DNA of 64,000 nucleotides from Podarcis liolepis. Taxonomy: Eukaryota. The position numbers and the translations under genes are program-made. The stretch lies in NCBI GenBank assembly GCA_965112155.1, contig OZ218105.1; one strand, 5' to 3'. The notes under the pieces are model-generated. The model saw only the letters and a program-made list of their open reading frames with translations. It ran no database searches and was not told the DNA's origin. Shown here in pieces: positions 28,442 through 60,139 of this stretch. Positions within the stretch are counted from its first letter, which is position 1. The number at the start of each line of letters is the position of its first letter.

Positions 28442-28798
28442 GGGGATGCGGGTCACGCTGTGGGTTAAACCACAGAGCCTAGGACTTGCTGACCAGAAGG
28501 TTGGCGGTTCAAATCCCCGTGACGGGGTGAGCTCCTGTTACTCGGTCCCTGCTCCTGCCAACCTAGCAGTTCGAAAGCACATCAACGTGCAAGTAGGTAA
28601 ATAGGTACCACTCCAGCGGGAAGGTAAACGGTGTTTCTGTGCACTGCTGCGGTTCGCCAGAAGCGGCTTAGTCATGCTGGCCCCATGACCCGGAAGCTGT
28701 ACACCGGTTCCCTCGGCCAGTAAAGCGAGATGAGCGCTGCAACCCCAGAGTCGGCCACGACTGGACTAATGGTCAGGGGTCCCTTTACCTTTACCTTT
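28442..28798 (+). mobile_element. Sauria SINE, full length
   Basis: tRNA-like head with B-box-like GGTTCAAATCC; 3' tail (ACCTTT)n; 13-bp TSD TATCCAAAACTAT (28429-28441 and 28799-28811). Confidence 0.9.
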
Positions 28799-36266: not shown

Positions 36267-36374
36267 GGAGTCCAGGATACAAGAGGTTAGTTTCTGATAT
36301 TAAGGTTGAGTCAGAGAGCAGAAGAGGAGAATTTGAGTTCTAAAACGATGTGCTTACTGATGTTGTGAATGCAG

Positions 36375-38364
36375 ATAAGAAATGACCAGCAGGTTAAAGG
36401 TGTGCAGGTCGGAGCTAAACATTATAAGTTAAGAGCGTTTGCAGATGACCTAGTATTGACTTTGCAAGAGCCAAACACTAGTACGAAAAAGGTTTTAGAA
36501 ATAATACAACAGTTTGGCCAGGTAGCTGGATTTAAGTTGAACAAGCAAAAAACTAAAGTTTTAGGGAAAAACTTAACAGATATGGAAAAGGAGAAATTTC
36601 AAGAGGAAACAGGTTTGACTGTGGTAAAGAAGGTGAAATACCTAGGGGTTTATTTAACATCTAAAAATCTGAATTTGTATAAGGACAACTATGAAAAATG
36701 TTGGTCAGAAATTAAAAAAGATCTAGAAATATGGTCAAATTTGAAACTGTCAATGCTAGGCCGAATCGCTGTGATTAAAATGAATGTATTGCCTAGAATG
36801 CTTTTTCTGTTTCAGACCTTGCAGATTCTCGACAAGATGGAATGTTTCAAGAGGTGGCAGAAAGATATTTCGAAATTTGTCTGGCAGGGCAAAAAGCCCC
36901 GAATTAAATTTAAGATATTGACAGATGCCAAAGAAAGAGGGGGTTTTGCCCTGCCGGACTTAAAATTGTACTACGAGGCAGCAGCTTTCTGCTGGCTGAA
37001 AGAATGGATGCTCCTCGAGAACACTGATATCTTGGATCTAGAAGGTTTTAACAATGCTTTTGGTTGGCATGCATATCTTTGGTATGATAAAGTAAACAGC
37101 GCTTTTAAAAATCACATTGTTAGGAAAGCATTGATTAATGTTTGGATAAGATACAAAGATCTATTGGAAAATAAAACCCCTAGATGGGTGTCACCAGTGG
37201 AGGCCAAAGCAGTGAAGAGACTCAATACGGAGGCCGGATGGCCGAAGTATTGGGAAATCTTAGAACAGGATGGAGACAAGTTCAGACTACAAAGTCAGGA
37301 GAAATTGAAGCATAAAGTTGGAAACTGGTTTCAATATCGTCAAATAATGGAATTTTTTAAACAGGACAGGAAAATTGGTTTCCAGGTGGAAAAATCAAAA
37401 TTAGAAACTGAACTGTTAGAACCCAATACTAAGATTTTATCTAGAATGTATAACTTGCTGTTGAAATGGAACACACAGGATGAAACAGTAAAATCTGCTA
37501 TGATTAAGTGGGCTCAGGATGTTGGACATAACATCATGTCAGCTGACTGGGAATGGTTATGGAACACCGGTATTAAATTTACGGCATGTAATGCCTTAAA
37601 GGAAAACATTATGAAAATGGTATACAGGTGGTACATGACCCCAGTCAAGCTGGCAAAAATCTATCATTTGCCTGATAATAAATGTTGGAAGTGTAAAGAG
37701 ACTGAAGGTACCTTTTATCACCTTTGGTGGACTTGCCCGAAGATTAAGGCCTTCTGGGAAATGATCTATAATGAAATGAAAAAGGTACTTAAATGTACCT
37801 TTCCCAAAAAGCCAGAGGCCTTTCTTCTGGGCATTGTCGGCCAATTGGTGACAAAGAAGGATAGAACTTTTTTTATGTATGCTACAACAGCGGCAAGAAT
37901 ACTCATCGCAAAGTATTGGAAGACACAAGATTTACCCACTCTGGAAGAATGGCAGATGAAAGTGATGGACTATATGACATTGGCCGAGATGACAGGCAGA
38001 ATCCGTGACCAACGAAAAGAGACGGTGGAAGAAGACTGGAGAAAATTTAAAAGTTATCTGAAGGATTATTACAAACTTAATGAATGTTAAAAATGTCGTG
38101 GTTTTCAGAAACAAGGGGGTACAGGGATATATGGTTAGAGGATAGAAAAGGACTAAGTTGACAGAGATTTGAAAGCAATAATTGGGAGTTGCTAGTTGAA
38201 GTATGGACATTGGGATGCAGAGAGGGGGGTATGGGGAAGTCCAAGAAAAGAGGTTTATAAGAAAATATGTATGAAACTATGCGTGTTTGTTTGTCATTTT
38301 CATTGTTTGTTTGTCTTTTTAAAACGTTGTAAAACCAATAAAAATTTTATAAAAAAAAAAAAAA
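36375..38364 (+). mobile_element. 5'-truncated L1/Tx1-clade LINE with open ORF2 3' part, 3'UTR and poly(A)
   Basis: FADD, KYLG, GGFALP and CWKC...HLWWTC motifs; AATAAA then A-tail at 38351-38364; 19-bp TSD ACTGATGTTGTGAATGCAG (36356-36374 and 38365-38383). Confidence 0.92.
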
Positions 38365-39663: not shown

Positions 39664-41334
39664 AGAAATACTTCAAGATAGCTGAGAAAGCCTCATTTTC
39701 TATCTCTTCTTTCTATCTATTTCTTGGTACTTGTTTTCCCCTGTCCTCACTATTTTATTATTTTGAATTCATTTACTCTGTTAATTTTTGTCCTTGTTTT
39801 AGCAGTATCGTTAAAAGCCCCTTGGATTGCCCATTTGGCAGGATTAATGCTTTGTATGTTTTAGAAAATTAAATAAAAAAGAAATGCCACTTCAACAGAC
39901 TTTGAGTTGAGAAGGATGACTTGCTAAATGGTATAGAAAACAGACTCATTGCCAAAGGGAATGAAGTAAAGAAATCTTCACATGTAGAGATTGAATGTTT
40001 GAAGAAAACAGAAGAAAGTATTTTCCCCAGGTTTTTTAAAAAGTGCATGATAGTTAATTCCACCAGTACAATCCCTATTTTCTGTGCTATTTTTCTAGAA
40101 AAAGAATGCAGAAATTCACCATGAAGGCCTCCCTTGTTCTCTTATAACAGCCATGGCACCCATCTGAGGGGTGTGGGACTTGAGCTCTGGTGAATTGTGG
40201 CTGAAAAAAAAGCCATGTTTATATCGATGTAGTGATATAGAAATTATAACTATGTGCATATAGAAATCTACACCTTTATAGGGCAATGTGACAATTAGCA
40301 GAAGTGATTCATGACATCAATGCTTCTCCAACTTTCCAATAATTTTTTGGGGAAAAAACACCAGAGCATACCGGGGGGGAGATGGCTCCATATCATGCCA
40401 CAATGCACTTTCCACTCAATGCTAGCCGTCAAGCCTATATATTCAAACATGCACTAGACTCTTTTGCATGGTGAAGAACTGAAATCACCATGTATAAAGA
40501 CTCACCTTGACACATCATTCTCGTTAACACTTATTAAGAATGATTAGGATGGGGCATGAGAATAAAGCCGTCAGGTGAAACCATGCAGTCCACTCTGCAC
40601 TGCAGATCAAAGAGTCCCCTTTGAGCAGGGGAGAAGATGACTGGGCTCCTCTTATGCTGATTAGCTTTTCACTGGCACAAGCTAAGAGACCCACCACAAT
40701 GTGCAAAGGCTCTAATGCAATTGAGAGGAAGCAAGATGCTCACATAAAAGGCTAACCAAAAATCAGCTTGAGCAAGTAACACTCATCATCAAAATGGCAC
40801 AAAGCACCTGATGGGTGTCAGAGAAAGATTACTGCCTTCCAACCCAGCTCCTACAGTCTGTGCGTGTGTGTGTGTGTGTGTCTGCGCGCGCGCGCGCGTG
40901 ATTAATGAAAGTACCGTAAATCTAATTATTCAAAAGAGAGGAATTAACTTGCTGTTGGACTGAAGCAGAAGGACTGAACCCAAGGATTGAGAATTGGATG
41001 TGGTCTGAGGTCCAGAACTTTAATTACCCCCATAATGTTTTGGAATTCTTTTGCATATCATTATTGTATATATAGTTATTTTCCCCCATAATATAAGTTT
41101 TGGGTTAGATGCTTTTGTAACTTGTCTCCTCTCACAGGAAACACCCAAATATCTTCTGCAGAAGTTCAAGCAAGATAGTTCTGGTGGCAGATAACAATGT
41201 TCTGGCATTTAACGGTCATGAACATGTGCCCAGTAGACCATTGCGTGTTGAGTCCCACAAAGCCACCCTCACCAATAACTCACACTTCACACGTTAATTT
41301 TGTTTAAGGTTTTTGGCATGATTTTGGCCACAAC

Positions 41335-41340
41335 TTTATT
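41335..41340 (-). terminator. Poly(A) signal of the YR retrotransposon
   Basis: AATAAA in TTTTAATAAAGTTGTGGCCAA, 92 nt from the element 3' end. Confidence 0.6.
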
Positions 41341-41352
41341 AAAATACATATA

Positions 41353-41693
41353 CGTGAGTGGTTGCTTAGGCATTGGTTAAGACTATCTGTCCTTGCCCAG
41401 GGACAGGGCTGGCCTTCCGGATTCCAGCGGAAGCCAGCCTGGGAAACAAGTATTGGGTGAGAAGGTGAGGCTGGGTAACAGTCCCACACCTCTCACCCTC
41501 ATGTTCCTGTGGGGCTTGCACGGCCCAGGTCCGACTCCGGGGACAAGGACGAAAGAATGGCAAGCCCCTGGATTCCTTTAACGGAATTCCCTTTCCGCCA
41601 CCATTGGAGGGGTAGGCACTTACCCCTCCCAACCAATTTTAAACCAATGCCTAACCGCCAATGGAGCCTTAGCTCGCCGCCAAACCACTCACG
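41353..41693 (-). ncRNA. Putative structured cis-acting RNA in the 3' UTR of the YR element
   Basis: Long-range inverted repeats 41353-41363/41683-41693 and 41366-41378/41642-41654 enclose several hairpins; motifs shared with 55806-56162. Confidence 0.55.
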
Positions 41694-42263
41694 AACTCAG
41701 CCAAGACCTTAGCTTAGCCACCACAGCACCCAACCACGCCTTATTCCCTAAGGCCGAAAGATGCACCCCATCATCCCTGAATAGAGATTCCTCCCTAGGC
41801 AGAATCTCAGGATGGGAAATCACGTCACCTCCCAACTCGAAAACTTTTTCCGAGACCGCTGAATTGATCCGCTTCCTAGCCCTCTCAGTGGCAGTTGGGC
41901 AACGACTGCCTCTCCAACTGCGCCTTTGCAAAAACTTTGACCAGAAAATTTTTGTTGCCGGCACCATTGCCCGCAGCACTTCAAGATCTCCCAGGATAGC
42001 AGCACGTAACGAAGCACAGTCCATAGAAACCAGGTCGTTCTCACCCAACTGCACCACAATGGCCGTGGGCGGCCCTTCCTCTGCCAGCTGCCTACGAATC
42101 AGTGGCAGAAACTCAGTCCAGGACATCCCCCTTCTGGCCAGCCAAGATACGCGCACGTGAGGAGGAAGGCCGAGACCCGGTCCCAATCTGAGCTGCCTGG
42201 CTCCAACAGCGGCCCAATGTACGATACTGTGCCCCACCATCCATATGCGTACGGCTGCTAAAC
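41689..42263 (-). CDS. SGNH/GDSL hydrolase (esterase) ORF of the YR retrotransposon
   Basis: IWMVGHS (block I), RGMSW (block II), QLGENDL (block III), DGVH (block V); ATG at 42240, with the frame open back to a splice acceptor at 42264. Confidence 0.85.
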
Positions 42264-42296
42264 CTGGTATAGAGAAACAAAATATAAAACATCATG

Positions 42297-43220
42297 TTAG
42301 CGAACATAGCCTCTAAACGCGTTCGACTTCCAACGACCCAAGTTCTTTATCCTGCCCGCAGACAGGCCCCAATGTGCTGCCATCGTGGCAGCCCCGATCC
42401 TGAAAGAATGTGGGGCAAAATCACTAGCAGAAGCACCACAAGCCGCAATGGCCTTCCGCATCACCCTTGCAAACTGTCGCCTAGACAGAGGCGACCCATC
42501 TTCGTGCTGCAATAATGGACCTTCTCCCGGAGCCCGGAGGGACAAGTACCTCCTGACATCTTTGACCGGACACGGACCCACCTCCCTTGCGGCCGGTAAA
42601 CGAATGAGGGCTCCCCTTCCACCCTGATCCGTTTTAGAATTCCTGATGAGGAGTCTTAGCTCATCTGGAGATAGCTGTGCATCCTGAAACAATAACCCCC
42701 TGGAACGACCATTATTGTGCTCCTCCCATACGAGCTCACCAACCCTTAGTGCTCCGAAGAAGGCAATAGAAAAGGCCGCAGAAAAAAGGCGAGCCTCATA
42801 CCTAGACCAGCAAACGCTCCTCAGCTCTTTGCGCATCTTGCACAGCAAATCATATGATATAGGGTGCCTAGTAGCTGGCTGGGAAGGACAAAGCCTACCC
42901 CATCCCTCAAGAGCCTTACGTACGGAAAACTTAGCGCAAGGATCCTTGTCAAAATAAGCTTTGCAGAAAAAGGCAATGGCAGCTGCCTGAATTCTTAGCG
43001 TCTTCGCTGCACGTCCTAACTGAAACAGGTGCGCCAAATATCTTAGCACCTGAGAAGTCAAGGGGGAAGCCCCCCTTTGCTCCCCGGCCGACTGATATGT
43101 AAAGGACAAAAAATCAGCCCATGCTTTGGTGTATGACCTGAGTGTAGAAGGAGAAATAGAAGCCATTACTCCCTGAAACACTAGCTCCTGCCAAGGCTCC
43201 AGAGATGATCCGGGAAACAT
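42297..43220 (-). CDS. Tyrosine recombinase
   Basis: FFGALRVGEL (R), SKTDQ (K), HSFRIGAAT (HxxR), GRWKS...GYVR (W, Y nucleophile). Confidence 0.95.
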   Translation of the reverse strand: MFPGSSLEPWQELVFQGVMASISPSTLRSYTKAWADFLSFTYQSAGEQRGASPLTSQVLRYLAHLFQLGRAAKTLRIQAAAIAFFCKAYFDKDPCAKFSVRKALEGWGRLCPSQPATRHPISYDLLCKMRKELRSVCWSRYEARLFSAAFSIAFFGALRVGELVWEEHNNGRSRGLLFQDAQLSPDELRLLIRNSKTDQGGRGALIRLPAAREVGPCPVKDVRRYLSLRAPGEGPLLQHEDGSPLSRRQFARVMRKAIAACGASASDFAPHSFRIGAATMAAHWGLSAGRIKNLGRWKSNAFRGYVR

Positions 43221-45193
43221 TCCGGACGTTTCCGAGCCTCTGGAACCAGAAGTCTGAACCGCTCCATCTGAAAACGGGACAGAGCATCAGCAATTTCGTT
43301 AGACACCCCCGGAACAAAACGTGCGGAAAAGACTATATTATAGCGTAAACAATGTAAAACAAAAGCCCGTAAGAGGGCCGACACCCTAGGAGAGCGGGAG
43401 GACAGCTTGGCCAACACGTTTACCACCGCCTGGTTATCAGTCCAGAAGCAGACTCGTCGGTCCCTGAACTCTTCGACCCACAAGTGCACTGCCACTGCAA
43501 TGGGAAAGAACTCAAGAAAAGTTAGGTCCCGAGTAATGGCTGTTCCCTGCCAATCAAGAGGCCAGCGCTTGGCACACCACCTACCCATCCAATATAGACC
43601 AAAACCTTGGGATCCTGCAGCATCTGAATGCACCTGAAAATCGTTCTGCAAGTTCAGAGTATCTTGCCATAACGATACCCCATTAAAATCCTCCAAAAAT
43701 TCCAGCCATATGCTGAGATCAGCCCTCACCTCCCTGGAAAGACGAACACGATGATGCGGGGCCTTCAAGCCCACCGTGAGGCGAGCCAATCGAGAGCAAA
43801 AGGGGCGGCCAGGGGCCACCACCCTACAGGCAAAATTCAGGTGACCTAACAGCGACTGGATCTGCAGTAGGGACACCTTCTTTAAGGGAAGCAATTCCTC
43901 TATAACATTTTTCAAAGCCACCAGCTTATCCTTTGGCAAGCTAGAGGTTTGAGACACCGTATCCAAAAGGATGCCCAAATACGTAAGCTGAGTCGAGGGG
44001 CCCTCAGTCTTTTCAGCCGCCAATGGGACCCCTAGCTCCTCAGTAAGGGCAGCTAAAGCACGCAACAGAACCGAGCAATTGTCAGTATTACACTCAGAAG
44101 CCAATAAAAAATCATCCAAATAATGAGTAACCCCTTCCAACCCGGTTTTCAGCTTGAGGGCCCATTCCAAAAAGGTGCTAAAAGATTCAAAAGCAGCGCA
44201 CGCTATAGAGCAGCCCATGGGCATGGCCTTGTCAAAATAGTATTTTCCCTCAAACTGGAAACCGAGCAGCCAGAAATCCTCCGGATGAATCGGGAGCAAG
44301 CGGAATGCCGACTCAATGTCGCATTTTGCCAATAACGCAGCTGGTCCAAACTTCCGGATCATCTTGATCGCGTGATCAAGAGAGGCATACCTAACTGAGC
44401 AAAGTTCTGGAGGAATCACATCATTAACTGAAGTACCCCTAGGGTGAGATAAATTATGAATCAAACGGAATTCACCAGGGGCCTTCTTTGGCACGATGCC
44501 CAGTGGGGAAACATGCAAATTAGTAAATGGAGGGGCACAAAAGGGGCCAGCCATCCGATGCATAGCCACCTCTTTCGTCATCTTCCTTCGGGCAATCTCT
44601 GGCAATTCACGAACTGATTTCTGATTAGACGAATTCCGAGCCACGGGAGGCTTGGCTACCGGAATCCGAAAACCAACTGAAAAACCGTCGCTCAGGTAAC
44701 GAGCGGCCTCCCTATCCGGGTAAAACCTGAGCCACTCTTTTAGGGCCGGCAGACGAATAGGAGTCTGGGCCAGTGAAGTCAGCACCTCATTTTGCTGTTC
44801 CTGAGGTTGAGGGTGTGGGGGGGGCTGCCTTGGGGGGTTGTTGAGAGCCCCCTTTTCCCCCACGAAAGGGCCGCCGCCCACCAAAACAAGAGGAAGCCGG
44901 ATGCAATCCATTGCACTTCTCACAAGTGTGCGCAAATCTACAAGTTGAACGCTGACAGGAAGTCCTGTTAAAATCCCAACACGGCAATCGACGGCCAGGT
45001 CTGAAGGCAGAGACACCCTGTTTCTGCTGCTCCGGTACCTTTTTGTCAATGAGTGGGGCAACATGAGTAGTCCACACATCGAGATCTTTCCGATCCCAGC
45101 GTGCAGACGGAATCTTGGCCGCACGACGCCTAAAGTTCTCATCATATTTGATTGCGGCTTTATCGCCAGCCTTGGTAAAGGCAGAGCGTACAA
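43181..45193 (-). CDS. Reverse transcriptase-RNase H (DIRS type); true start uncertain, overlaps gag
   Basis: FRLIHNLS, KCDIESAF, MPMG, HYLDDFL, YLGI; RNase H SDAA, FLEFFPI, TDNQAVV, NEIADALSR; no methyltransferase tail seen. Confidence 0.95.
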   Translation of the reverse strand: MYALPLPRLAIKPQSNMMRTLGVVRPRFRLHAGIGKISMCGLLMLPHSLTKRYRSSRNRVSLPSDLAVDCRVGILTGLPVSVQLVDLRTLVRSAMDCIRLPLVLVGGGPFVGEKGALNNPPRQPPPHPQPQEQQNEVLTSLAQTPIRLPALKEWLRFYPDREAARYLSDGFSVGFRIPVAKPPVARNSSNQKSVRELPEIARRKMTKEVAMHRMAGPFCAPPFTNLHVSPLGIVPKKAPGEFRLIHNLSHPRGTSVNDVIPPELCSVRYASLDHAIKMIRKFGPAALLAKCDIESAFRLLPIHPEDFWLLGFQFEGKYYFDKAMPMGCSIACAAFESFSTFLEWALKLKTGLEGVTHYLDDFLLASECNTDNCSVLLRALAALTEELGVPLAAEKTEGPSTQLTYLGILLDTVSQTSSLPKDKLVALKNVIEELLPLKKVSLLQIQSLLGHLNFACRVVAPGRPFCSRLARLTVGLKAPHHRVRLSREVRADLSIWLEFLEDFNGVSLWQDTLNLQNDFQVHSDAAGSQGFGLYWMGRWCAKRWPLDWQGTAITRDLTFLEFFPIAVAVHLWVEEFRDRRVCFWTDNQAVVNVLAKLSSRSPRVSALLRAFVLHCLRYNIVFSARFVPGVSNEIADALSRFQMERFRLLVPEARKRPECFPDHLWSLGRS

Positions 45194-46313
45194 TCGACAG
45201 ATAAACTAACAAATGAAGGGACCTACGTGGATAAGCTGCCATGACTATACCGGCGAAGACCTGAAAACAGTCAAGCCAGTGTTCGAAGGTCCTGCCCGCC
45301 GCAGAAACCCCTGAGCGCTTTTTAGTAGAAGCGCTTCCTTTTTCCTGCTCTTCAGAAGGCGGGGCTAACTTGAAAATGTCTACATAGCGTCCATTTAAAA
45401 TCCTGGCCCGCCATTTCGATGACAAGTGTGAGCCTGGGATAATATCCCTGGCCGAATTGGTTGAGACTTTAATGTCGGGAACCAACACACCATCCCTGCA
45501 TTCTTGAACAGCTCCATACTTTGCCCGATGAGCGTTGGACCTGCGCTCCCAAGCCCACCTAGGAAGCCCCGAAGCCGATTCACCAAAACCCCAATAAAGT
45601 TCCAAGTGAGTACCCTCATCGTCGGAGCTAGAGGAAGACGTACCCGAAGTGGAGGAAGTGGAGTCATCCTTCCTGCGCTTTGCACGTTTCCGAGACGCCC
45701 TCTTGTGGCGACGCTTCCCTCCCAAGGACTTCCTGGCGGGGACCGGGAGACTGTCTTCGACAGAGGATTCCGAATCAGGGTGCTGCTGAGACGGAACTGA
45801 AACAGACTGCATAGAGACAACATGTGAGATACCAGAACCGGATGCCACAACCGGTAGAGAGCGAGCAGGTGTGCGCCGGCGAGTGGACGCAGCCAACGGT
45901 GCGCTCCTTCCCGAGGCCCGCCTGGAAAGGCGGCCTGACCGCCGAGGCCAGTTCTGTATTACAGGTAAGCCAGGAGACTGGGATAACTGTGGATTCCTAA
46001 TTAAACCCTGTGGTGACGATCCTTCTCCCTCATCCTCGCTAGATGACGATGAAGCCGGAGGCGGCACCACTGCTGAAGAGGGCGGGCCCCCAGACGTGGA
46101 CGGTTGAGAAGAACGATGTTGCAGGAAAAGGTCCAAATCAGCTGCGAAGCGAGATAGAGCCGCAGGGTCACCTGCCATGCCTGCCACCAACGATTGCACT
46201 CGCCCCACCGGTTGATTGGTGGGGGGAGAGCGGAGCACTTGGGATGGACCTCTGATAGGCCGTTTTGACGTGATGGCAGAGCTGGAGCGCGTAGCAGCTT
46301 TCTTTGGAGCCAT
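44787..46313 (-). CDS. Gag-like ORF1 of the YR retrotransposon
   Basis: Ser/Arg-rich N-terminal half with a basic NLS-like stretch; YDENFRR; C-terminal CWDFN...C...C.FAHTCEKC..LH...C zinc finger typical of DIRS/Ngaro Gag. Confidence 0.88.
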   Translation of the reverse strand: MAPKKAATRSSSAITSKRPIRGPSQVLRSPPTNQPVGRVQSLVAGMAGDPAALSRFAADLDLFLQHRSSQPSTSGGPPSSAVVPPPASSSSSEDEGEGSSPQGLIRNPQLSQSPGLPVIQNWPRRSGRLSRRASGRSAPLAASTRRRTPARSLPVVASGSGISHVVSMQSVSVPSQQHPDSESSVEDSLPVPARKSLGGKRRHKRASRKRAKRRKDDSTSSTSGTSSSSSDDEGTHLELYWGFGESASGLPRWAWERRSNAHRAKYGAVQECRDGVLVPDIKVSTNSARDIIPGSHLSSKWRARILNGRYVDIFKLAPPSEEQEKGSASTKKRSGVSAAGRTFEHWLDCFQVFAGIVMAAYPRRSLHLLVYLSIVRSAFTKAGDKAAIKYDENFRRRAAKIPSARWDRKDLDVWTTHVAPLIDKKVPEQQKQGVSAFRPGRRLPCWDFNRTSCQRSTCRFAHTCEKCNGLHPASSCFGGRRPFRGGKGGSQQPPKAAPPTPSTSGTAK

Positions 46314-46729
46314 ACCTGCTAGCAGGAGATAAAATCAAAACCAGTTAAATTACCGATCGCAACAGCAAAATAAGGCTAGCAACCTCCAGACAATAAGCCC
46401 TGCTGGGCCTTCCACCAGCTGTTACTAGATCACCTCAAATGAATTCTAGGCCGCAGCTCGGAAAAGACTGTCTCTTGGCCAAGGCAATAGCCAGGTGTAT
46501 TCGTCTCTTACAGTATCTATCTATCTATCTATCTATCTATCGGAAAATAAAACAAAGATGCAGTCGTAAGCACTGATGCCAGCCCAAGAGGCCCCAGCAG
46601 GCCCAAACGCAAATAAATTACCACCAAGCAGCAGTAATATTACTTGCCCAGTCACTTATTTAGCGGCAGTGTGATAAATTAGCAGCCAGCAGGGGCAGGG
46701 GTAGGGGGGGTGGGGGGTGAGGCCCAGTC

Positions 46730-47270
46730 CCTCACAAAACAATTGAGGCGCAGTACCTCTCAGAGCCACTAGGGGGAGCCTCCGTCGGCAAGACGATGCC
46801 CCAAAATGGCGGAGCCAACCAGAATGACTCGGCAATAGTAGCTAGGCCGCGAGCGCGCCCAGGGCCGCGGCGCTGACGCGACGGGCCTGTATTTGCCCCC
46901 CCCGCACGCCCACGCGAGGCGGGCGGGCCCGCTGGCTCAAGAATGGGGCCCGCTGAAATCACCCCGGCGGGGCGCTCCCCCGCCGCCGCCGCCGCGCGGC
47001 CGCCGGACACAGCCCCGGAGAACGGGGCGTCGCCGACGCGGCAGCGACCTCGGCGAATTGGGCCTGGATCCCGCCGCCCGCCGCGACCCCAGGTAGGCCC
47101 GAGTGCACAGGAGCCGCAATGAGGGCGGGGGGGGGGGTCTAAGGCGCTCCGCTACGGAGCTATGGATGGGAGAAGGGCGGGCCGCGGCCCTGCGAGGGCA
47201 CGGGCGCTTCCCCCGGCGCACGGGAGGAGGCCTCCCCTGGACTGGGGGGGGCACCCCCGCTCCCACTAAA
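46730..47270. promoter_or_regulatory. CpG-rich 5' region of the YR element
   Basis: Very high GC content and undecayed CpGs compared with the AT-rich host. Confidence 0.5.
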
Positions 47271-47519
47271 CTGCAATTAAATTAACTAAAGAAGCCAAAT
47301 TAAATTAACTAATAAATAAACAAAAGGACAGATCTAGACGAAAGAGGAGGAAGGGAAAAAACGGGAAGGAAATAATAAAGGGAGAGGAACAGAAGGCAAT
47401 AAGGCCCAAAGAAAATCAACGTCCAATAAACAATTCTTTATACTCAGCAACCGGCTCCAGACAATCTGCTCCGTGATCCGATGCAGAGGCCAAGAGGACT
47501 TCCCCACGTGAGTAACCTG

Positions 47520-47527
47520 TATTTATA
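47520..47527 (-). promoter_or_regulatory. Putative internal TATA box (TATAAATA) of the YR element
   Basis: ~160 bp inside the 5' terminus, same strand as the ORFs. Confidence 0.5.
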
Positions 47528-48369
47528 GCCTCTGTCCTTCTCTCTCAATTGGAAACATGCTAAACTCCCCAGCAACCCAATTAACCCTTTAAGGGATTCT
47601 ACTTTGTCCAAACCTGCCTGGTAACAGCAGGGTGGCTTGTATTCTCCCACCCGCAACCCATGCTCTCTTTTGATGGAGAACACGCTTTCCCATACAGAGT
47701 CTTCTATATCACATATCTAAGTCTCATGTGCAGCAATATCAAGCTGATACTTCCCATGTTTGGGCTCCTGTACCCAAAACTATAGCACCATTGCATAAGA
47801 TACATGCTTTGTGTAGCACTGAGAGGGGCATAAAACCCCCAGAACAACCCGAAGAAAATTCATTGGAATGGGATATGGAATGACTAAATGGAAAAAAACT
47901 AAGAACCAGGTGGAAGGGGGCATGATGTATGTTGGTCTCTCTCTTTCACACAAACACACACAGAGAGAGAGAAAGAGAGAGAGAGAGACCATCTCTTGGT
48001 CTGGCTAGATTGTAGCCTTTTTTCCTTGTCCCCAGGATGGAATGAAGAGTATTCCCAAAAAATAGAGGCTTTAAAGAATTGAGGCATGTGGGATTGGGCT
48101 GAAGTATGTTGAAGACCCAGCAAAAAAAGCATATCGGCCTCCCACACATTTCAAAGTTTTCCCAACAGGATTGAAAAATCAAATAGATTAAGGCCTGCCA
48201 GCAGATCATCATGAGGAGGATAGTCCTGTTGTGTTCAGAATGAGAAATGGTGGTCAGTTTTGCATCTACGCTGCAGCAAGAAGAAAAAAGAGGAACTAGT
48301 GGCAGAACGAACAGCACAGTCAGATGCACTTTGCCCATGCTTGAAATCCTAAGTAACACAAAATGTATA

Positions 48370-51435: not shown

Positions 51436-51556
51436 ATATGAGTGTCTCACTTTAATATGGTTGAGCTTTGTAGGCAAAACTGACTCCACATTTGCTTCTT
51501 TTCTCCTGGTAGAAAGAGCCATTGAAGGAGTAGCTCAGAAGCAGAGATCCTGCAAG

Positions 51557-52540
51557 ATGAACAATGATGGCCTGGGATCCTTGTCCCCTTGGAATGCTTC
51601 ATGGGAAGACATTGGAGCAGAAAATGGAACTGACATCCTAACCCCCCAGGACAGTTTTGATCATGAATTATCACTAAATCATCCTATACCAGCAATTATT
51701 CTATATTTCATAATTATAGTTATTAGCATTTTTGGACTTATGGGGAATGGAACTGTCATCTGGTTTCTTGGTTTTTGCATGAAGAGGAATCCTTTTACCA
51801 CTTTCATACTACATCTGGCTGTTGCTGACCTTGGGGCTCTCATGACCTTATCTTGTTGTTCGATTATGAGAATTTTGAGTTTATTTCAATTCTTCACTTT
51901 TTATATTTACTTGTTTGAAGTATTCGAGTATTTGTTGCTGTTCATGTACAACACTGGTCAATATCTGTTGACAGCCATTAGCATGGACAGGTGTGTTTCT
52001 GCTGTCTTCCCACTTTGGCATCGATGCCACCGACCACCACACTTTTCCACCCTTGTGTGTGCCACAATATGGATCCTGCTCACTGTAATCAGCATGATTC
52101 TTTATCTTTTTAGAGATACAATGAGTCTCCTTCTCTATCTGCTTCTAATAAATGCTATACTTTGCCTCCCACTCATGACTGTTTCCACTCTGGTCCTGTT
52201 TATAAAAGTTTACTTCAGATCACAACTGAGGAAGAAGGGAAAAGCTTTAACAGCCATCCTACTTGCCCTCCTCTTCTTCCTCTTCTTAGCTTTCCCATTT
52301 ACTTGCATTTTATTAATCAATTTTTTCATTTTAGACTATAATGTTGTATTTTTTGCAATACCAGTTGGGTTATTATGCAGCTGCCTGAATAACAGTATTA
52401 ACCCACTGATTTATTTCCTGGTTGGGAGAAACAAGAGGGCTCGATCCAGGGAGAGCATGAAGGTCATACTCCAGAGACTTTTCAAAGAGGAGGAAAACTG
52501 CAGAGAGGAACAAGAAGTACCAGTTCAAACCCAGATGTGA
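51557..52540 (+). CDS. MRGPRH-like: Mas-related GPCR, intact, 327 aa (ATG at 51557)
   Basis: AAGATG start is homologous to the paralogs; 7TM motifs; in-frame 3-codon deletion in TM4. Confidence 0.88.
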   Translation: MNNDGLGSLSPWNASWEDIGAENGTDILTPQDSFDHELSLNHPIPAIILYFIIIVISIFGLMGNGTVIWFLGFCMKRNPFTTFILHLAVADLGALMTLSCCSIMRILSLFQFFTFYIYLFEVFEYLLLFMYNTGQYLLTAISMDRCVSAVFPLWHRCHRPPHFSTLVCATIWILLTVISMILYLFRDTMSLLLYLLLINAILCLPLMTVSTLVLFIKVYFRSQLRKKGKALTAILLALLFFLFLAFPFTCILLINFFILDYNVVFFAIPVGLLCSCLNNSINPLIYFLVGRNKRARSRESMKVILQRLFKEEENCREEQEVPVQTQM

Positions 52541-54300: not shown

Positions 54301-54620
54301 ACTTGCCGATCAGAAGGTCAGTGGTTTGAATTCCCACGACGGGGTGAGCTCCCGTTGCTCGGTCCCTGCTCCTGCCAACCTAGCAGTTCGAAAGCACGTC
54401 AAAGTGCAAGTAGATAAATAGGTACCGCTCTGGCGGGAAGGTAAGCGATGTTTCTGTGCGCTGCTCTGGTTCGCCAGAAGTGGCTTAGTCATGCTGGCCA
54501 CATGACCCAGAAGCTGTACGCCGGCTCCCTCGGCCAATAAAGCGAGATGAGCACCGCAACCCCAGAGTCTGCCACGACCGGACCTAATGGTCAGGGGTCC
54601 CTTTACCTTTACCTTTACCT
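54301..54620 (+). mobile_element. Sauria SINE, 5'-truncated
   Basis: Colinear with 28483-28798; (ACCTTT)n tail. Confidence 0.88.
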
Positions 54621-55449
54621 ATAGCTCTGTTTAGAGTAGGTAATGTCTTGATAATATAATGTTTTAAGTTTTTTTGAATTAATCCAGCATATTTCCTTTT
54701 AATTGTTGAATGATTCTGTGTACATTGCGGCAGCCTTTGGCTATGTGCAATAAAACTGACTGACTCAGGTATGTGAATGTTTCAAGTTGGTGAAGTTCAT
54801 TTGCAAGAGCAAGAGGGGGACCATAATTGGGTGGCAGAGGTGAACGTGCAGGAGGACTACTCTTGAAGCGAAACCAGTTTCTTTGTGACATAAATGGTCC
54901 TGTTGTTCTTCTTCATTATATGCATTCTGTGATTAGAGAGCATGGAAGAGAGCAAATTGGGGTATAATAAACTGTAGGTTAAAATAATGTGTATTTTTTT
55001 TCCATATGTCAGTAGCTGACTGGATTGTTTGTCTGTGTATTTAATATGTGGATTTAGGAACAGACCAAGATGTGTAATTCCAAGTCGGACTTTCTGATCC
55101 CCTTGGTCAGCACTGTCTGCTGTAAAGGGGGGGGGGAGCATTCTCAATGATCCTATAGGATCTCAAGGAGAGGATCTCCAGGATTTCCCCTCCCTTGGTC
55201 CCTTGAACTAGAGTCACCACAGCTTAAATTTTGGCACCTCTGCATGTAACATATGTATTATAATCCCCAAACTATAGTCCCTCTCCAGAACCACTTCTTA
55301 TTATAGCTGCACAGACTGTGATTTTCATTTTTTTAAAAAAGTGATGAAAAAGAGAATTTAAATTGGACCAATAAGAACAATGACCGCTCCCCACATCAAA
55401 TGGGGGGTGCCTTTTGCCTGGTTGCACACAGCCCCCCCCCCAGATCCCA

Positions 55450-56245
55450 GTGTGGACCCTGGTAGTTTGGGCTGGCTTCATCCTCCCCAGGTTGGATATC
55501 TGGAGGTCTCTGCCTACCTCAGCCAATTGCCCAATCCCGCCTGGGGAGGCGTTACAAGGAGTTCGGCCAGGTAAGGGGAGGGACCACCCTGCCCACACAA
55601 CAGAAGGTGAATCCTACCTGCGAAGTGTCAGTTGATTCCAGAGCTTCTCCCACCCTGCCCTCCCTCCGTTAAGTCTTCTTTTGCAGGTTAACCTCTTCTG
55701 CACAGGTATGCAGGCGCTGCTATGTCTTGGTCACTGTTGAAGGGCCGGAAAGGAATTTTCCAGCATTGGCAGGTTTTGCCTTTCCAGTAGCAAAACATCA
55801 AAACTTTGGCAGTTTCAGGCCTTGGGCGGGATCCTTTAGTCTATCTTCCTAAATGGGGTGTGTGTGTGAAGTGGTGACCCACGCCCCCCTTGCGGCGGTC
55901 AGCCCAGGGTTCACTGTTAAAGGGGTCTTGAGGGGAGGCATTGGCGAAACACCAAGAGGTTGTCATTGCTGTCCCCTCCAACGGCGGCGAAACAGGGGCG
56001 GGCTCTCTGCTTGAACATATGTTCTCCAGAGCCAGCACAATCCCCACACATTCTGGGTAACCCTGATGTCTTCCAGATCCCCGGCTGCGGATTCGGAAGG
56101 ATAAACGCCCAGTGCCTGAGCCAAGGTCTCCCTACACCTGAAATTTAATAAAGTTGTGGCCAATTGCAATCCCATAGCACGTTGTTTTGAGTCATTATTC
56201 CGCTCAGGGGTTGCCTGGGGTTGGGGGGACTCTGCCTGTCCACGC
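55450..56245 (+). mobile_element. Putative non-autonomous relative of the YR retrotransposon (non-coding; 5' end uncertain)
   Basis: Shares TTTAATAAAGTTGTGGCCAA, CCCCTCCAAYGGYGGCG, the paired AGGC/GCCT arms and the CACGC|AA terminus with 41243-41693; candidate TIR GTGTGGAC/GTCCACGC. Confidence 0.6.
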
Positions 56246-56901
56246 AAAAGTTACATACACTTTTTAACACTGCTGCTGTTGTTTTCCCAATATATTGCCT
56301 TGTTTTTGCCTCATTATCCTTTGAGTTACTCCACCATAAGTACCAAGCCCCATAAGTGCCAATCATAGGTACGAAACTCAGAACCAAGAAATCAAAGGAA
56401 GTCTTTAGATTCACAACTGAGATTCTTCTTGGTGTCCTATCTGTTATCAGATTTCTGTTTCACACTTAACAGCTAAGTTCTGATTGTATCAGAATAGGAA
56501 ATAGTGGTTAGTTTTGCAACTAGGTTGCAGCAAGAAGACAAAAGAGGAACTAGTGGCCGAATGAACAGCACACTTAGATGCTCTTTGCCCATGCTTGAAA
56601 TCCAAAGAAACACAAAATGTATACTTGGAACATAGAGGCAAATGTCCAGGGTTTTGGCAGGAACAATAGGTGAGTATTTCAAGTAATCAGTTCCCTGTTT
56701 CTTCTCTGTCACTTTGCAAAATCCTATTGAGCTCAATGAGCATTGGATTAATTGGAGGGTCCCCTCTCCATTTGTGTCTTTCCCCCCAACTATTTATTTG
56801 ATATATCTGTTGTGAAAAATCAATAATGGCCATATCTGCCCAATTCAAACTACGCAAATTTTCAAATGTCTCCATTAATGTCTATGGCTGACCATCTAAC
56901 A

Positions 56902-57037
56902 CAGTGGTGGCCAAACTTGGTCCTCCAGCTGTTTTGGGACTACAACTCCCATCATCCCTAGCTAACAGGACCAGTGGTCAGGAATGATGGGGATTTTAGT
57001 CCCAAAACAGCTGGAGGACCAAGTTTGGCCACCACTG
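56902..57037. mobile_element. hAT-type palindromic MITE, 136 bp
   Basis: CAGTGGTGGCCAAACTTGG ... CCAAGTTTGGCCACCACTG; 8-bp TSD ATCTAACA/CTCTAACA (7/8 match); empty site at ~48705 and ~62750. Confidence 0.85.
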
Positions 57038-58538
57038 CTCTAACATCTCACGGGGCATATAAAAACAGGTTCTCAGGGCTCCTCCACACCTCATTTAGCC
57101 TTCCATTTCCCGTCCAGGAAAACCCTCTCTGTACTGCTGAATCGAAACAAATGACCATTGGGTTTTCTGCAGATTGCTGTTCATTCCAATTCAGAGTCAA
57201 AGAGTGTGTTTTTCAACGGAAAGCTGCACTGCAAAGGCAAGGTCACTTGGACCAGTGCCTGGAAGGTCCCCGGAGAAGGCTTGAAACTGTGTCTTTTTGG
57301 AATGGGACTGGTGGATGGGTGGATGAACCCTCAATTTGAACAAGGAAAATGACCTAGCCAGAACATGCCATGTTATTTACTGTACATAGATCTTTACATA
57401 CATATGTGTGTGTGTGCCATCTCATCCAACCATTCCATCATGTTCTCCTCTCCTACCTGGTTAACCATTGTCCACCTCTTAGTCATTCAAAAGCCCCCCC
57501 CCCCCCATGATTTCCAGGTTCCATAGTTACGCCTGTGGGGCTCCATACACACCATGAATTCAAAGCATATCATCCCCCCCAAAGAATCTCAAGCACTGTA
57601 GTTTTGACCCTCACCCAGTTCCTCCCTGCAATTTATTTTCTCACTTATCTCAAGAATGCTATTCTATGACATCAAGACTTTGGAGGCAAGAACCTCCTGT
57701 GTAATCAGCTCTCTTGACAACCAATGAACAAAATTCTTCTTGCCACAGGATGTTGGCAAATTGCTTAAGAACAGATGAAGAGTAATGGGTGGAGCCCTAA
57801 ACATCTTGGGGAGAGCTTGGTGATACATCTATTTTCTCCTCCTTGGGTCTGTAGTCAATTCTGCCAATCTTCTGACTACCTCTTCATTCCAGCACATGAT
57901 TTTGTGTTTCTTGCTGCCTCCAACTCACCTTGTCTTTAGACGGCTAATCAACAGTTGCTCACAGGTATGTGAATGTCTCAAGTTGACATGGTTCATTTGC
58001 AAAAGTGGGAGAGGAACCAAAGGCAGAAGTGTACATGCATTTAAGGCAGAAAAGCCCAAGTTGAATCCCTGAAGAAGGAATACTGGGATGGAGAAACCAA
58101 TAACCTGCCTCACAAGTGCTCTACAGTAGGAATACAACAGTTTACTGGTGGTGGCAATTGTCCTTCTTATGATAGGAAATGCTATGTGAGAGTCAAAGAA
58201 TCGGGATTGAGGGGGATCAATAGGAGAGGAGTTTAAAATGACCCTATTTTCATCTGAGGAATGTTTGGGGATATGTCAATGTATCTGGGATTGAACAGAA
58301 GTGTCCCCAATGCCCTGTAAAACAACAACAACAGGTTGCTCTTCAGAGTTGCCTGAAGTGGGTTGTGAAATTAAAGAGCTGATGGGCCAGCAGAAAACCA
58401 CAGGTGTGGAGATGACTGTTGTGTTCTGAAGCTGTTTGTAGGCTTCCCTTAAGGATCTGTTTGGCCATTGGGAGACCAGGACAGTGGATTTCAGTTGAGT
58501 TTTATTTATTCTGGTTTTGTTAAATATCACATTTTAAT

Positions 58539-58583: not shown

Positions 58584-59176
58584 TTACATATGCGTTCCCA
58601 AGGCATTGTTTCATTATGTTTTTATTTATGTTGAAAGCCATCAACTGTGGCTGGGGAACCCAGTCAGATGGGCTGGATACTAATAATAATAATGGCTTTT
58701 GTTTTCCTGATCTCCAGAGCCATTCAACTCCTTCTCCTGTTCCTCTTCTCTTCTCCACTCCAGTTCTGAAGCACTGAGCCTATCCAACCACCCCACTCCC
58801 AGGACAAAATACGTAAGTTTCAGATGTTAAGACTGACTCCGAGAGCAGAAGAGGGGAAATTTAGTTTAGCTTACTGATGCTGTGCCTGCAGATTTTTCTA
58901 CTGGGTGGAAAAATCTATAACCATACTGCATTTCCCCCTAAACCTTTGAAACTGATAAGTTTTGACAAGAATTCCAATGAACAATATTCCTAAAGTGATT
59001 GTTTGTTTGTTTATCGGTCATGAATTCCCACTACAGCATGTCTCTTTTGTTATTGTATGAATGTCTCACTTTAATATGGTTGAACTTTATAGCAAAAAAA
59101 TGAATCCACATTTGTTTATTTACTCTTGGTAGGAAGAGCCATACAAGAAATAGCTGAAAAGCAGAAATTAAGCAAG

Positions 59177-60139
59177 ATGAGCTATGGTAGCCTGGGAACC
59201 TGGTCCACTTTGAATGGAACCGGCAATGGAACTGGGCTCCCCAACTCCCAACATGGTTCTGGTGATATATTTTCATCGATTTTTTTAACAGAAATTATCA
59301 TCATCTCCGTTTTACTTATTAGCATTTTTGGACTTATGGGGAATGCAACTGTCATCTGGTTTCTTGGCTTTTGCATGAAGAGGAATCATTTCACCACCTT
59401 CATCCTGCATCTGGCTGCGGCTGACCTTGGGACTCTCATATGCTTATTTACTTTGTCCATTATACGTCTTCTGGGGTTATTTTCATTTTCATTCTTAGAT
59501 TATTATTATTTGTTATTACCTTGGGGTTCCATTCTTTTTTTATTCATGTGCAACACTGGTCAATATCTGTTGACAGCCATTAGCATGGACAGGTGTGTTT
59601 CTGTCGTCTTTCCCCTTTGGCATCGATGCCACCGACCACCACACTTTTCCACCCTTGTTTGTGCCACAATATGGATCATTGCTTTCCTGATCTCTGTAAT
59701 CTTCATAATTCTTTATGTTTTTAGACTTCCAATGAGTTCCCTTTTCTATCTGCTTCTAATGAATGCTATACTTTGTCTCCCACTCATGACTGTTTCCACT
59801 CTGGTCCTGTTTATAAAAGTTTACTTTAGATCACAACAGAGGAAGAAGGGGAAAGCTTTAACAGCCATCCTACTTGCCCTCCTCTTCTTCCTCTTCTTAG
59901 CTTTCCCATTAACTTGCATTGTATTATATATTCTCTGCAATGGTGGAAACAATACTAAACTATTTCTTGGCCTCTTATGCAGCTGCCTAAACAGCAGTGT
60001 TAACCCACTGATTTATTTCCTGGTTGGACGAAAGAAAAACAGTCCATCAAGGGAGAGCTTGAAGGTCATATACCAGAGGGTTTTCAAGGAGGAAGATTGC
60101 AGAAAGAAGCGAGATGTTCCGGTCCAAACCCAGATCTGA
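59177..60139 (+). CDS. MRGPRH-like: Mas-related GPCR, intact, 320 aa (ATG at 59177), most divergent paralog
   Basis: AAGATG start; 7TM motifs; distinct N-terminus, ECL3 and C-tail. Confidence 0.9.
   Translation: MSYGSLGTWSTLNGTGNGTGLPNSQHGSGDIFSSIFLTEIIIISVLLISIFGLMGNATVIWFLGFCMKRNHFTTFILHLAAADLGTLICLFTLSIIRLLGLFSFSFLDYYYLLLPWGSILFLFMCNTGQYLLTAISMDRCVSVVFPLWHRCHRPPHFSTLVCATIWIIAFLISVIFIILYVFRLPMSSLFYLLLMNAILCLPLMTVSTLVLFIKVYFRSQQRKKGKALTAILLALLFFLFLAFPLTCIVLYILCNGGNNTKLFLGLLCSCLNSSVNPLIYFLVGRKKNSPSRESLKVIYQRVFKEEDCRKKRDVPVQTQI

Follow-up and report, generated by a model that had tools for sequence, protein, structure and literature searches.

At 55450-56245 of a 64,000-nucleotide stretch of DNA from Podarcis liolepis (the window; coordinates are those of the window, on its plus strand unless stated otherwise) lies a segment that holds no ORF of note and from which the autonomous Ngaro gene set is absent, and whose 3' part resembles that of an intact tyrosine-recombinase (YR) retrotransposon of the Ngaro type 8 kb away. 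The question raised by this locus is what such a segment is, and by what route it came about. The earlier note on this DNA had considered it a SINE/MITE-like parasite of a YR retrotransposon. We lean, with a confidence slightly above even, toward a different answer: the unit, extending from ~55380 (or 55450) to 56247, would be an aged and mutated copy, without ORFs, of a dispersed repeat composed of one A-type and one B-type terminal module of a Ngaro family deeply diverged from the intact copy, generated as a by-product of Ngaro copying.

The intact Ngaro copy occupies 41243-47685 on the minus strand. Its four ORFs correspond to a gag-like protein, a reverse transcriptase (RT; PF00078), a tyrosine recombinase with Phage_integrase and SAM-like domains, and a GDSL/SGNH hydrolase; RT, YR and SGNH hydrolase together are the gene set given for vertebrate Ngaro elements (PMC9210276). 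The closest relatives of the SGNH ORF come from Podarcis muralis and P. lilfordi (82-74% identity), and it also matches a far more distant Podarcis protein at 45% identity, and the presence of this second relative beside the close ones points to at least two deep Ngaro lineages in Podarcis lizards. A sequence search of 41243-47685 found no split direct repeats. The non-coding 3' module of this copy, 41243-41700 on the minus strand, begins right after the stop codon of the SGNH ORF (41689-41691). At its other end, the 1.37-kb leader contains a very GC- and CpG-rich block (46850-47300, minus strand) and a (GATA)n microsatellite (46521-46544, minus strand), and an acceptor-like CTCCTGCTAGCAG/GT closes the leader just before the gag ATG (46313).

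When 55450-56245 was set against the reverse complement of 41243-41700, all of the motifs listed in the earlier note were present at the positions and in the order claimed. These are TTGGCRGTT (55806 in the unit and 41661, minus strand, in the Ngaro copy, to which all second positions in this sentence refer), GAGGGG...CCCCTCCAAYGGYGGCG (55930-55989 and 41628-41596), CTTCC...GGAAG (56070-56099 and 41433-41414), CCARTGCCTRAGC (56109 and 41376) and the 20-mer TTTAATAAAGTTGTGGCCAA (56144 and 41343). TGAGTYATT, GGGACTC and a terminal CACGCAA are found in both elements alike, and the distance from AATAAA to the end is, as had been stated, 93 nt in the unit and 92 nt in the Ngaro copy. The 20-nt block, at 56144-56163 of the unit, is identical in the two elements and includes the poly(A) signal AATAAA (56147-56152); within the 64-kb window it occurs at these two sites only when up to three mismatches are allowed, where 0.01 would be expected. 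A metagenome scan with the same 20-mer gave two matches, both located at the start of a bacterial gene, and we dismissed them as chance. In the tail past the poly(A) signal, 56164-56247, a GU-rich stretch with TGAGTCATT (56188-56196) is followed by GGGACTC (56226-56232) and the terminal CACGCAA (56241-56247).

Could this sharing of motifs reflect chance, or a common low-complexity or GC-rich composition? The poor alignment of most of the sequence between the motifs would fit such an explanation, but a gap-tolerant colinear chain score of 114, against 67.6 +/- 7.1 for dinucleotide shuffles (z ~6.5) and 82 for the best of 230 real windows, refutes it, as do the nhmmer match between the two 3' modules (E 2.4e-7 and, reversed, 6.7e-7, with ~340 nt aligned) and the restriction of the 20-mer to two sites; we consider the chance explanation practically negligible. 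The same two comparisons bear on the earlier proposal that the sequence between the motifs is unalignable and that structure rather than sequence is conserved, which did not hold up: the stretches between motifs are weakly alignable, which argues for deeply diverged homology and not for structural likeness alone. A MAFFT alignment of the two modules put several of the motifs wrong, and for this reason the chain score, nhmmer and an alignment anchored on the motifs were used instead. Judged by sequence comparison, the B module is thus homologous to a bona fide Ngaro 3' module, in nhmmer and chain score, in motif order and in the CACGCAA end. On the other hand, the link between the unit and the neighbouring Ngaro copy is a likeness at the level of motifs, so the parent of the unit would belong to a different Ngaro family from the copy at 41243-47685. 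A role of the neighbouring copy itself as the partner is not supported, the two elements being too diverged from each other.

One detail of the correspondence is ambiguous. The GAGGGG hairpin with its GGCGG motif is present in two copies in the unit and in one in the Ngaro copy. The first, GGGGTGTG...CACGCCCC followed by CCTTGCGGCGG (55855-55898), is the one that nhmmer pairs with the Ngaro GGGAGGGG...CCCCTCC and AATGGTGGCGG, whereas the earlier note had picked the second, GAGGGG...CCCCTC followed by CAACGGCGGCGAA (55930-55991), which is the better sequence match to the Ngaro motif.

The B-type domain of the unit, 55767-56135, homologous to 41654-41313 of the Ngaro copy, is predicted to fold into a closed bundle of hairpins, among them the two described above and the CTTCC...GGAAG hairpin (56070-56099). 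The 3' modules of both elements form closed multi-hairpin domains more stable than those of shuffled sequences (z -2.7 for the unit and -4.1 for the Ngaro copy). The bundle of ~300 nt is closed by a long-range helix of 18 bp between 55806-55828 and 56106-56124. That the first and fourth motifs pair with each other despite changed bases, as had been noted before, is corroborated by the duplex energies: -28.3 and -21.1 kcal/mol in the two elements, across spans of ~290-300 nt, compared to -12.4 +/- 3.1 and -8.1 +/- 2.6 kcal/mol for shuffled partners. Read by eye, the closing helices of the unit and the Ngaro copy differ by three two-sided compensatory changes (C-G to U-A, G-C to U-A and C-G to U-A) and one wobble-compatible change. 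The consensus fold of the anchored two-sequence alignment, an alignment fitted to the motifs, has a z of -5.7 against column shuffles, and covariation in the inner hairpins cannot be proved from two sequences. Folded as a whole, the element is no stabler than its shuffles (z 0.05); thus an end-to-end fold of the unit is unsupported and the B domain alone stands out. The motif TTGGCRG from the 5' strand of the closing helix occurs twice in both elements, 22-39 nt apart (55767-55774 and 55806-55813 in the unit; 41683-41677 and 41661-41655, minus strand, in the Ngaro copy), and a duplicated 5' strand facing a single 3' strand makes two alternative pairings possible. Positioned just 5' of the poly(A) signal, the closed bundle probably acts as a cis-acting signal of the Ngaro RNA or cDNA, through which the element's own proteins would recognise it or start priming.

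Next to the question of homology stands that of whether the unit is peculiar to this locus. Let us consider that a single Ngaro insertion at this locus left behind an isolated deletion relic or a fragment truncated at its 5' end, as the age of the element, its mutations and its want of ORFs might suggest. Contigs of two DNA runs, from two species, and two RNA runs were placed on 54450-57250. Summed contig depth is 1e4-9e4 inside 55390-56235 and ~20-200 in the unique flanks, a ~100-1000x difference seen in two lizard species; summed depth is not itself a copy number, and its ratio to single-copy depth gives several hundred to a few thousand copies at at least 82% identity. The right edge is sharp at 56245-56247, with depth falling from ~7e4 to ~60 across 56236-56330, and the contig of another copy aligns up to 56247, after which 106 nt remain unaligned. 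A single contig spans 55669-55849, across the boundary of the 5' and 3' modules, and its continuity indicates that the A-B junction is a property of the family and not a local deletion. The element is therefore not single: it is multi-copy, with a fixed right end and the same junction in another copy, and the left edge of this dispersed repeat is approximate. A deletion relic, largely refuted by read depth and the shared junction, is also hard to reconcile with homology that begins exactly where the non-coding 3' module of the Ngaro copy begins, after the SGNH stop codon, and with the lack of any coding relic beside the B module: tblastn with the Ngaro proteins and 17 relatives found nothing below E 0.08. 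We regard this explanation as very unlikely.

The same contigs give an impression of age. At the listed sites where the copy at this locus deviates, 32-100 contigs (47-100 outside 56088) share the family letter, and the listed family copies differ from the unit by 13-17%; the agreement of the contigs against this copy, together with that difference, marks it as an old member of the family. RNA reads in the two RNA runs were few and on both strands, and do not show that the unit is expressed as such or where its transcripts end. In run X1, a contig links 55593 to 55807 through GGG, the right breakpoint being the first base of the closing helix, and hence at least one family member lacks 213 nt of the 5' module (55594-55806).

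The left end is less sharply defined than the right. The start at 55450 had been based on a 7/8 inverted match between GTGTGGAC (55450-55457) and GTCCACGC (56238-56245), and it has become doubtful: one contig joint leads from 54498 to 55379, depth is raised in the bins 55296-55483 in all four runs, and in the two DNA runs the bin 55390-55483 has a depth ~40% above that predicted for a 55450 start, although low-complexity A/T sequence at 55320-55350 may make the depth further upstream appear higher than it is. The left end probably lies near 55380, which would give a unit of ~0.87 kb. The probable 5' extension, 55380-55449, contains a 9-bp hairpin with the loop CATCAAA (55385-55409), 5 nt from 55380, that is kept in the whole-element fold. 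It is mirrored in the Ngaro copy by a 6-bp hairpin, TTCTC-CATCAAAA-GAGAG (47681-47662), starting 4 nt from its 5' end. The 8-nt inverted repeat would then probably be internal to the unit and not terminal. The terminal 8-mer GCGTGGAC is not enriched in the window, where the pair of terminal motifs has no further copy, and GYGTGGAC occurs 3 times in the window compared to 1.55 expected.

Beyond this hairpin and a CCAATTG motif placed at a comparable offset, no significant similarity links the 5' half of the unit to that of the Ngaro copy: nhmmer, local alignment and a band test of k-mers along the diagonal all fell short of significance. The non-coding 5' module (55450-55766) has two CCAAT boxes, at 55523-55527 and 55531-55535, as well as a local hairpin formed by 55482-55497 and 55534-55549. 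We label it "A" solely from its position, the promoter-like CCAAT boxes and the one shared terminal hairpin. In 54500-57500 no internal direct repeats were found beyond chance, nor was a second copy of the unit found in the window, and with no internal direct repeats the unit would hold one A and one B. We thus picture the layout as an A-B terminal unit, a single promoter-side module with its two CCAAT boxes joined directly to one B-type module. A splice-donor-like CAG/GTAAGG (55566-55576) and an acceptor-like TCTTCTTTTGCAG/G (55673-55688) are located ~115 nt apart in the 5' module, and no spliced reads are listed.

To which class of repeat, then, does the unit belong? The earlier idea of a SINE/MITE-like parasite survives in part. 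The unit is indeed non-coding and multi-copy, with a fixed 3' end and a 3' module homologous to that of Ngaro, but it has no pol III head and no target-site duplication (TSD), and its 8-nt inverted repeat is probably not terminal. As a SINE it was rejected because a tRNA search found no tRNA head and Rfam gave no match at E<=1; as a MITE, because the sole inverted match is the 7/8 8-mer, probably internal, and the flanks lack a duplication. A size of ~0.8 kb, CCAAT boxes and an AATAAA ~90 nt before the end resemble the U3-R-U5 arrangement, and one might think of a solo LTR from an unrelated LTR retrotransposon or endogenous retrovirus that shares the poly(A)-region motif by chance. The unit, however, ends in ...CACGCAA on the right and begins with ATGACC or GTGTGG on the left instead of having TG...CA ends, it has no TSD, the CACGCAA end is common to both elements, and what is shared with the Ngaro 3' module is not one motif but homologous sequence of ~340 nt; a solo LTR is accordingly highly improbable. 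The unit is best filed with the solo AB and SIRE-like units, known in a few protists, and is neither a SINE nor a MITE. A-rich flanks abut both elements, GGAAA/GCGTG...CACGC/AATGG in the Ngaro copy (47685/47686 and 41242/41243) and ...CACGC/AAAAG in the unit (56245-56249), where slashes mark the edges. A short AA core could be shared with the target, as would be expected of crossover by a tyrosine recombinase; from two copies this cannot be judged.

The canonical layout of Ngaro elements, with split direct repeats (SDRs), is A1-ORFs-B1-A2-B2 (PMC9210276), and a single A-B unit might be derived from it by any of three routes. Once the element is inserted, A1 and A2 might undergo homologous recombination and leave such a unit, in the way a solo LTR arises; the RT might switch template between the direct repeats; or the recombinase might resolve the two B/A junctions of a circular intermediate. 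Let us then ask what would become of a unit so formed. With AATAAA 93 nt before the end, followed by GU-rich sequence, and with any promoter necessarily inside A, RNA made from a single unit would start within A and end short of the last ~70 nt, and would thus be without both termini; the tail 56164-56247 is probably absent from transcripts ending at the AATAAA site. In the SDR model, an internal B1/A2 junction would restore the ends, but a lone A-B unit has no such junction from which its termini could be restored, and single units would therefore be dead ends or by-products, not a self-sustaining SINE-like lineage. On its anatomy and on precedent, the A-B unit would more likely be a Ngaro by-product than a SINE-like parasite. 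Roughly judged, several hundred to a few thousand copies is a high number for a mere by-product, and this counts against our reading.

That number is also among the considerations behind an alternative which we regard as possible but less likely than our own reading, namely that the unit belongs to a true non-autonomous Ngaro partner, SIRE- or TOC1-like, whose A-B elements are copied in trans by autonomous Ngaro proteins that read the fold of the B domain. Replication would then be carried by masters, either AB-AB dimers or copies that have SDRs but no ORFs, from which single units such as this one descend in collapsed form. The high apparent copy number together with the fixed 3' end, the B-domain architecture kept despite deep sequence divergence, and the resemblance of the unit to a transcription unit, with CCAAT boxes and AATAAA, would all agree with such a partner, and non-autonomous YR retrotransposons are known: TOC1 (PMC9940879) and possibly SIRE (PMC6681497). 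Nevertheless, the copy at 55380-56247 has no split direct repeats and on the standard model would have no means of restoring its ends, neither a dimer nor a master copy was seen in the window, family-level RNA reads are few and on both strands, and the neighbouring Ngaro is similar at the level of motifs only, unlike the near-identical tails of typical LINE/SINE pairs. A bolder version, in which AB units would be the vertebrate counterpart of SINEs for YR retrotransposons, ORF-less, pol II-transcribed and copied in trans via the B-domain fold from dimer or SDR masters, or else would be produced through an integration-competent AB mini-circle made by the recombinase, we consider rather doubtful.

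The by-product reading draws its precedent from units of this kind elsewhere. The genome of the protist Cafeteria burkhardae contains solo AB repeats of Ngaros, which Hackl et al. (2021; PMC8547959) attribute to recombination and compare with solo LTRs; these are likewise ORF-less, isolated A+B terminal units of Ngaros, scattered in the genome. The two cases differ in the host and in that matching full-length elements are seen in C. burkhardae, whereas none with the modules of the lizard unit was seen in the window. The lizard unit is also abundant (very roughly 1e3 copies) and old, and has a closed hairpin domain of ~300 nt in B, while the part of the report cited makes no mention of such a domain for the C. 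burkhardae units (PMC8547959).

A second parallel is found in trypanosomes. SIRE is likewise short, abundant and gene-less, is made up of the modules from the 5' and 3' ends of a YR element with split direct repeats, and poses the same question of mobilised element or remnant. In Trypanosoma cruzi, SIRE corresponds to A2+B2 of the YR retrotransposon VIPER (Vazquez et al., 2000; Ribeiro et al., 2019; PMC6681497), and the authors of the latter work do not decide between mobilisation and a remnant. It differs from the lizard unit in that VIPER does not belong to the Ngaro superfamily, in the kingdom of its host and in its size, ~0.43 kb versus ~0.8-0.87 kb.

TOC1 has 5.7 kb and keeps split-repeat ends that permit its replication; the lizard copy, in contrast, is a single unit without repeats. 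TOC1, found in Chlamydomonas, is a non-autonomous retrotransposon of the DIRS order (PMC9940879), and likewise a non-coding YR derivative reliant on an autonomous relative. Solo LTRs and non-autonomous LTR derivatives (TRIM, LARD) are likewise regulatory modules from the ends of an element, equipped with promoter and poly(A) signal, that remain alone once the internal region is lost, but the lizard unit is without LTR ends or TSD, and its parent works with a tyrosine recombinase rather than a DDE integrase. Where a SINE and its partner LINE have a 3' tail in common, the idea is similar, in that a structured 3' module is the handle for the RT of the partner. From such SINEs the lizard unit differs in that a pol III head, an A-rich or simple-repeat tail and a TSD are all missing, and in that it resembles the autonomous element nearby far less than the members of known LINE/SINE pairs resemble each other.

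The replication of YR retrotransposons is poorly understood, and we know of no cis-acting RNA or DNA signal defined for Ngaro elements. That two almost unalignable Ngaro lineages keep the hairpin bundle, the 20-nt poly(A) block, a tail of ~92 nt and CACGCAA points to these as parts under functional constraint. Abundant AB units in lacertids would supply hundreds of sequences for a covariation test of the B fold, and would let the choice between by-product and parasite, the question left by SIRE and VIPER, be tested directly. For annotation, such units belong under DIRS/Ngaro-derived repeats, not under unknown repeats or SINEs.

Lastly, a few observations concern the surroundings of the unit. 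Two very abundant repeats flank the locus, at 54450-54637 and 56894-57081, with summed depths of 1e6-1e7 and thousands of RNA reads on both strands. The former has a 90% identical copy at 28583-28798, and the latter includes an inverted repeat with 58-nt arms (56902-56959 and 56980-57037) that are 93% complementary; both are probably host SINEs or hairpin-type repeats. On either side of the unit, the intronless plus-strand ORFs 51461-52540 and 59126-60139 carry 7TM domains of the rhodopsin family (Pfam 7tm_1, E ~1e-14), and the AB unit appears to be located inside a receptor gene cluster. Further away, a 573-aa ORF at 36369-38090 on the plus strand matches part of the reverse-transcriptase domain (PF00078, E 1.6e-7); it has no relation to the Ngaro copy and is probably a fragment of a LINE or another retroelement.
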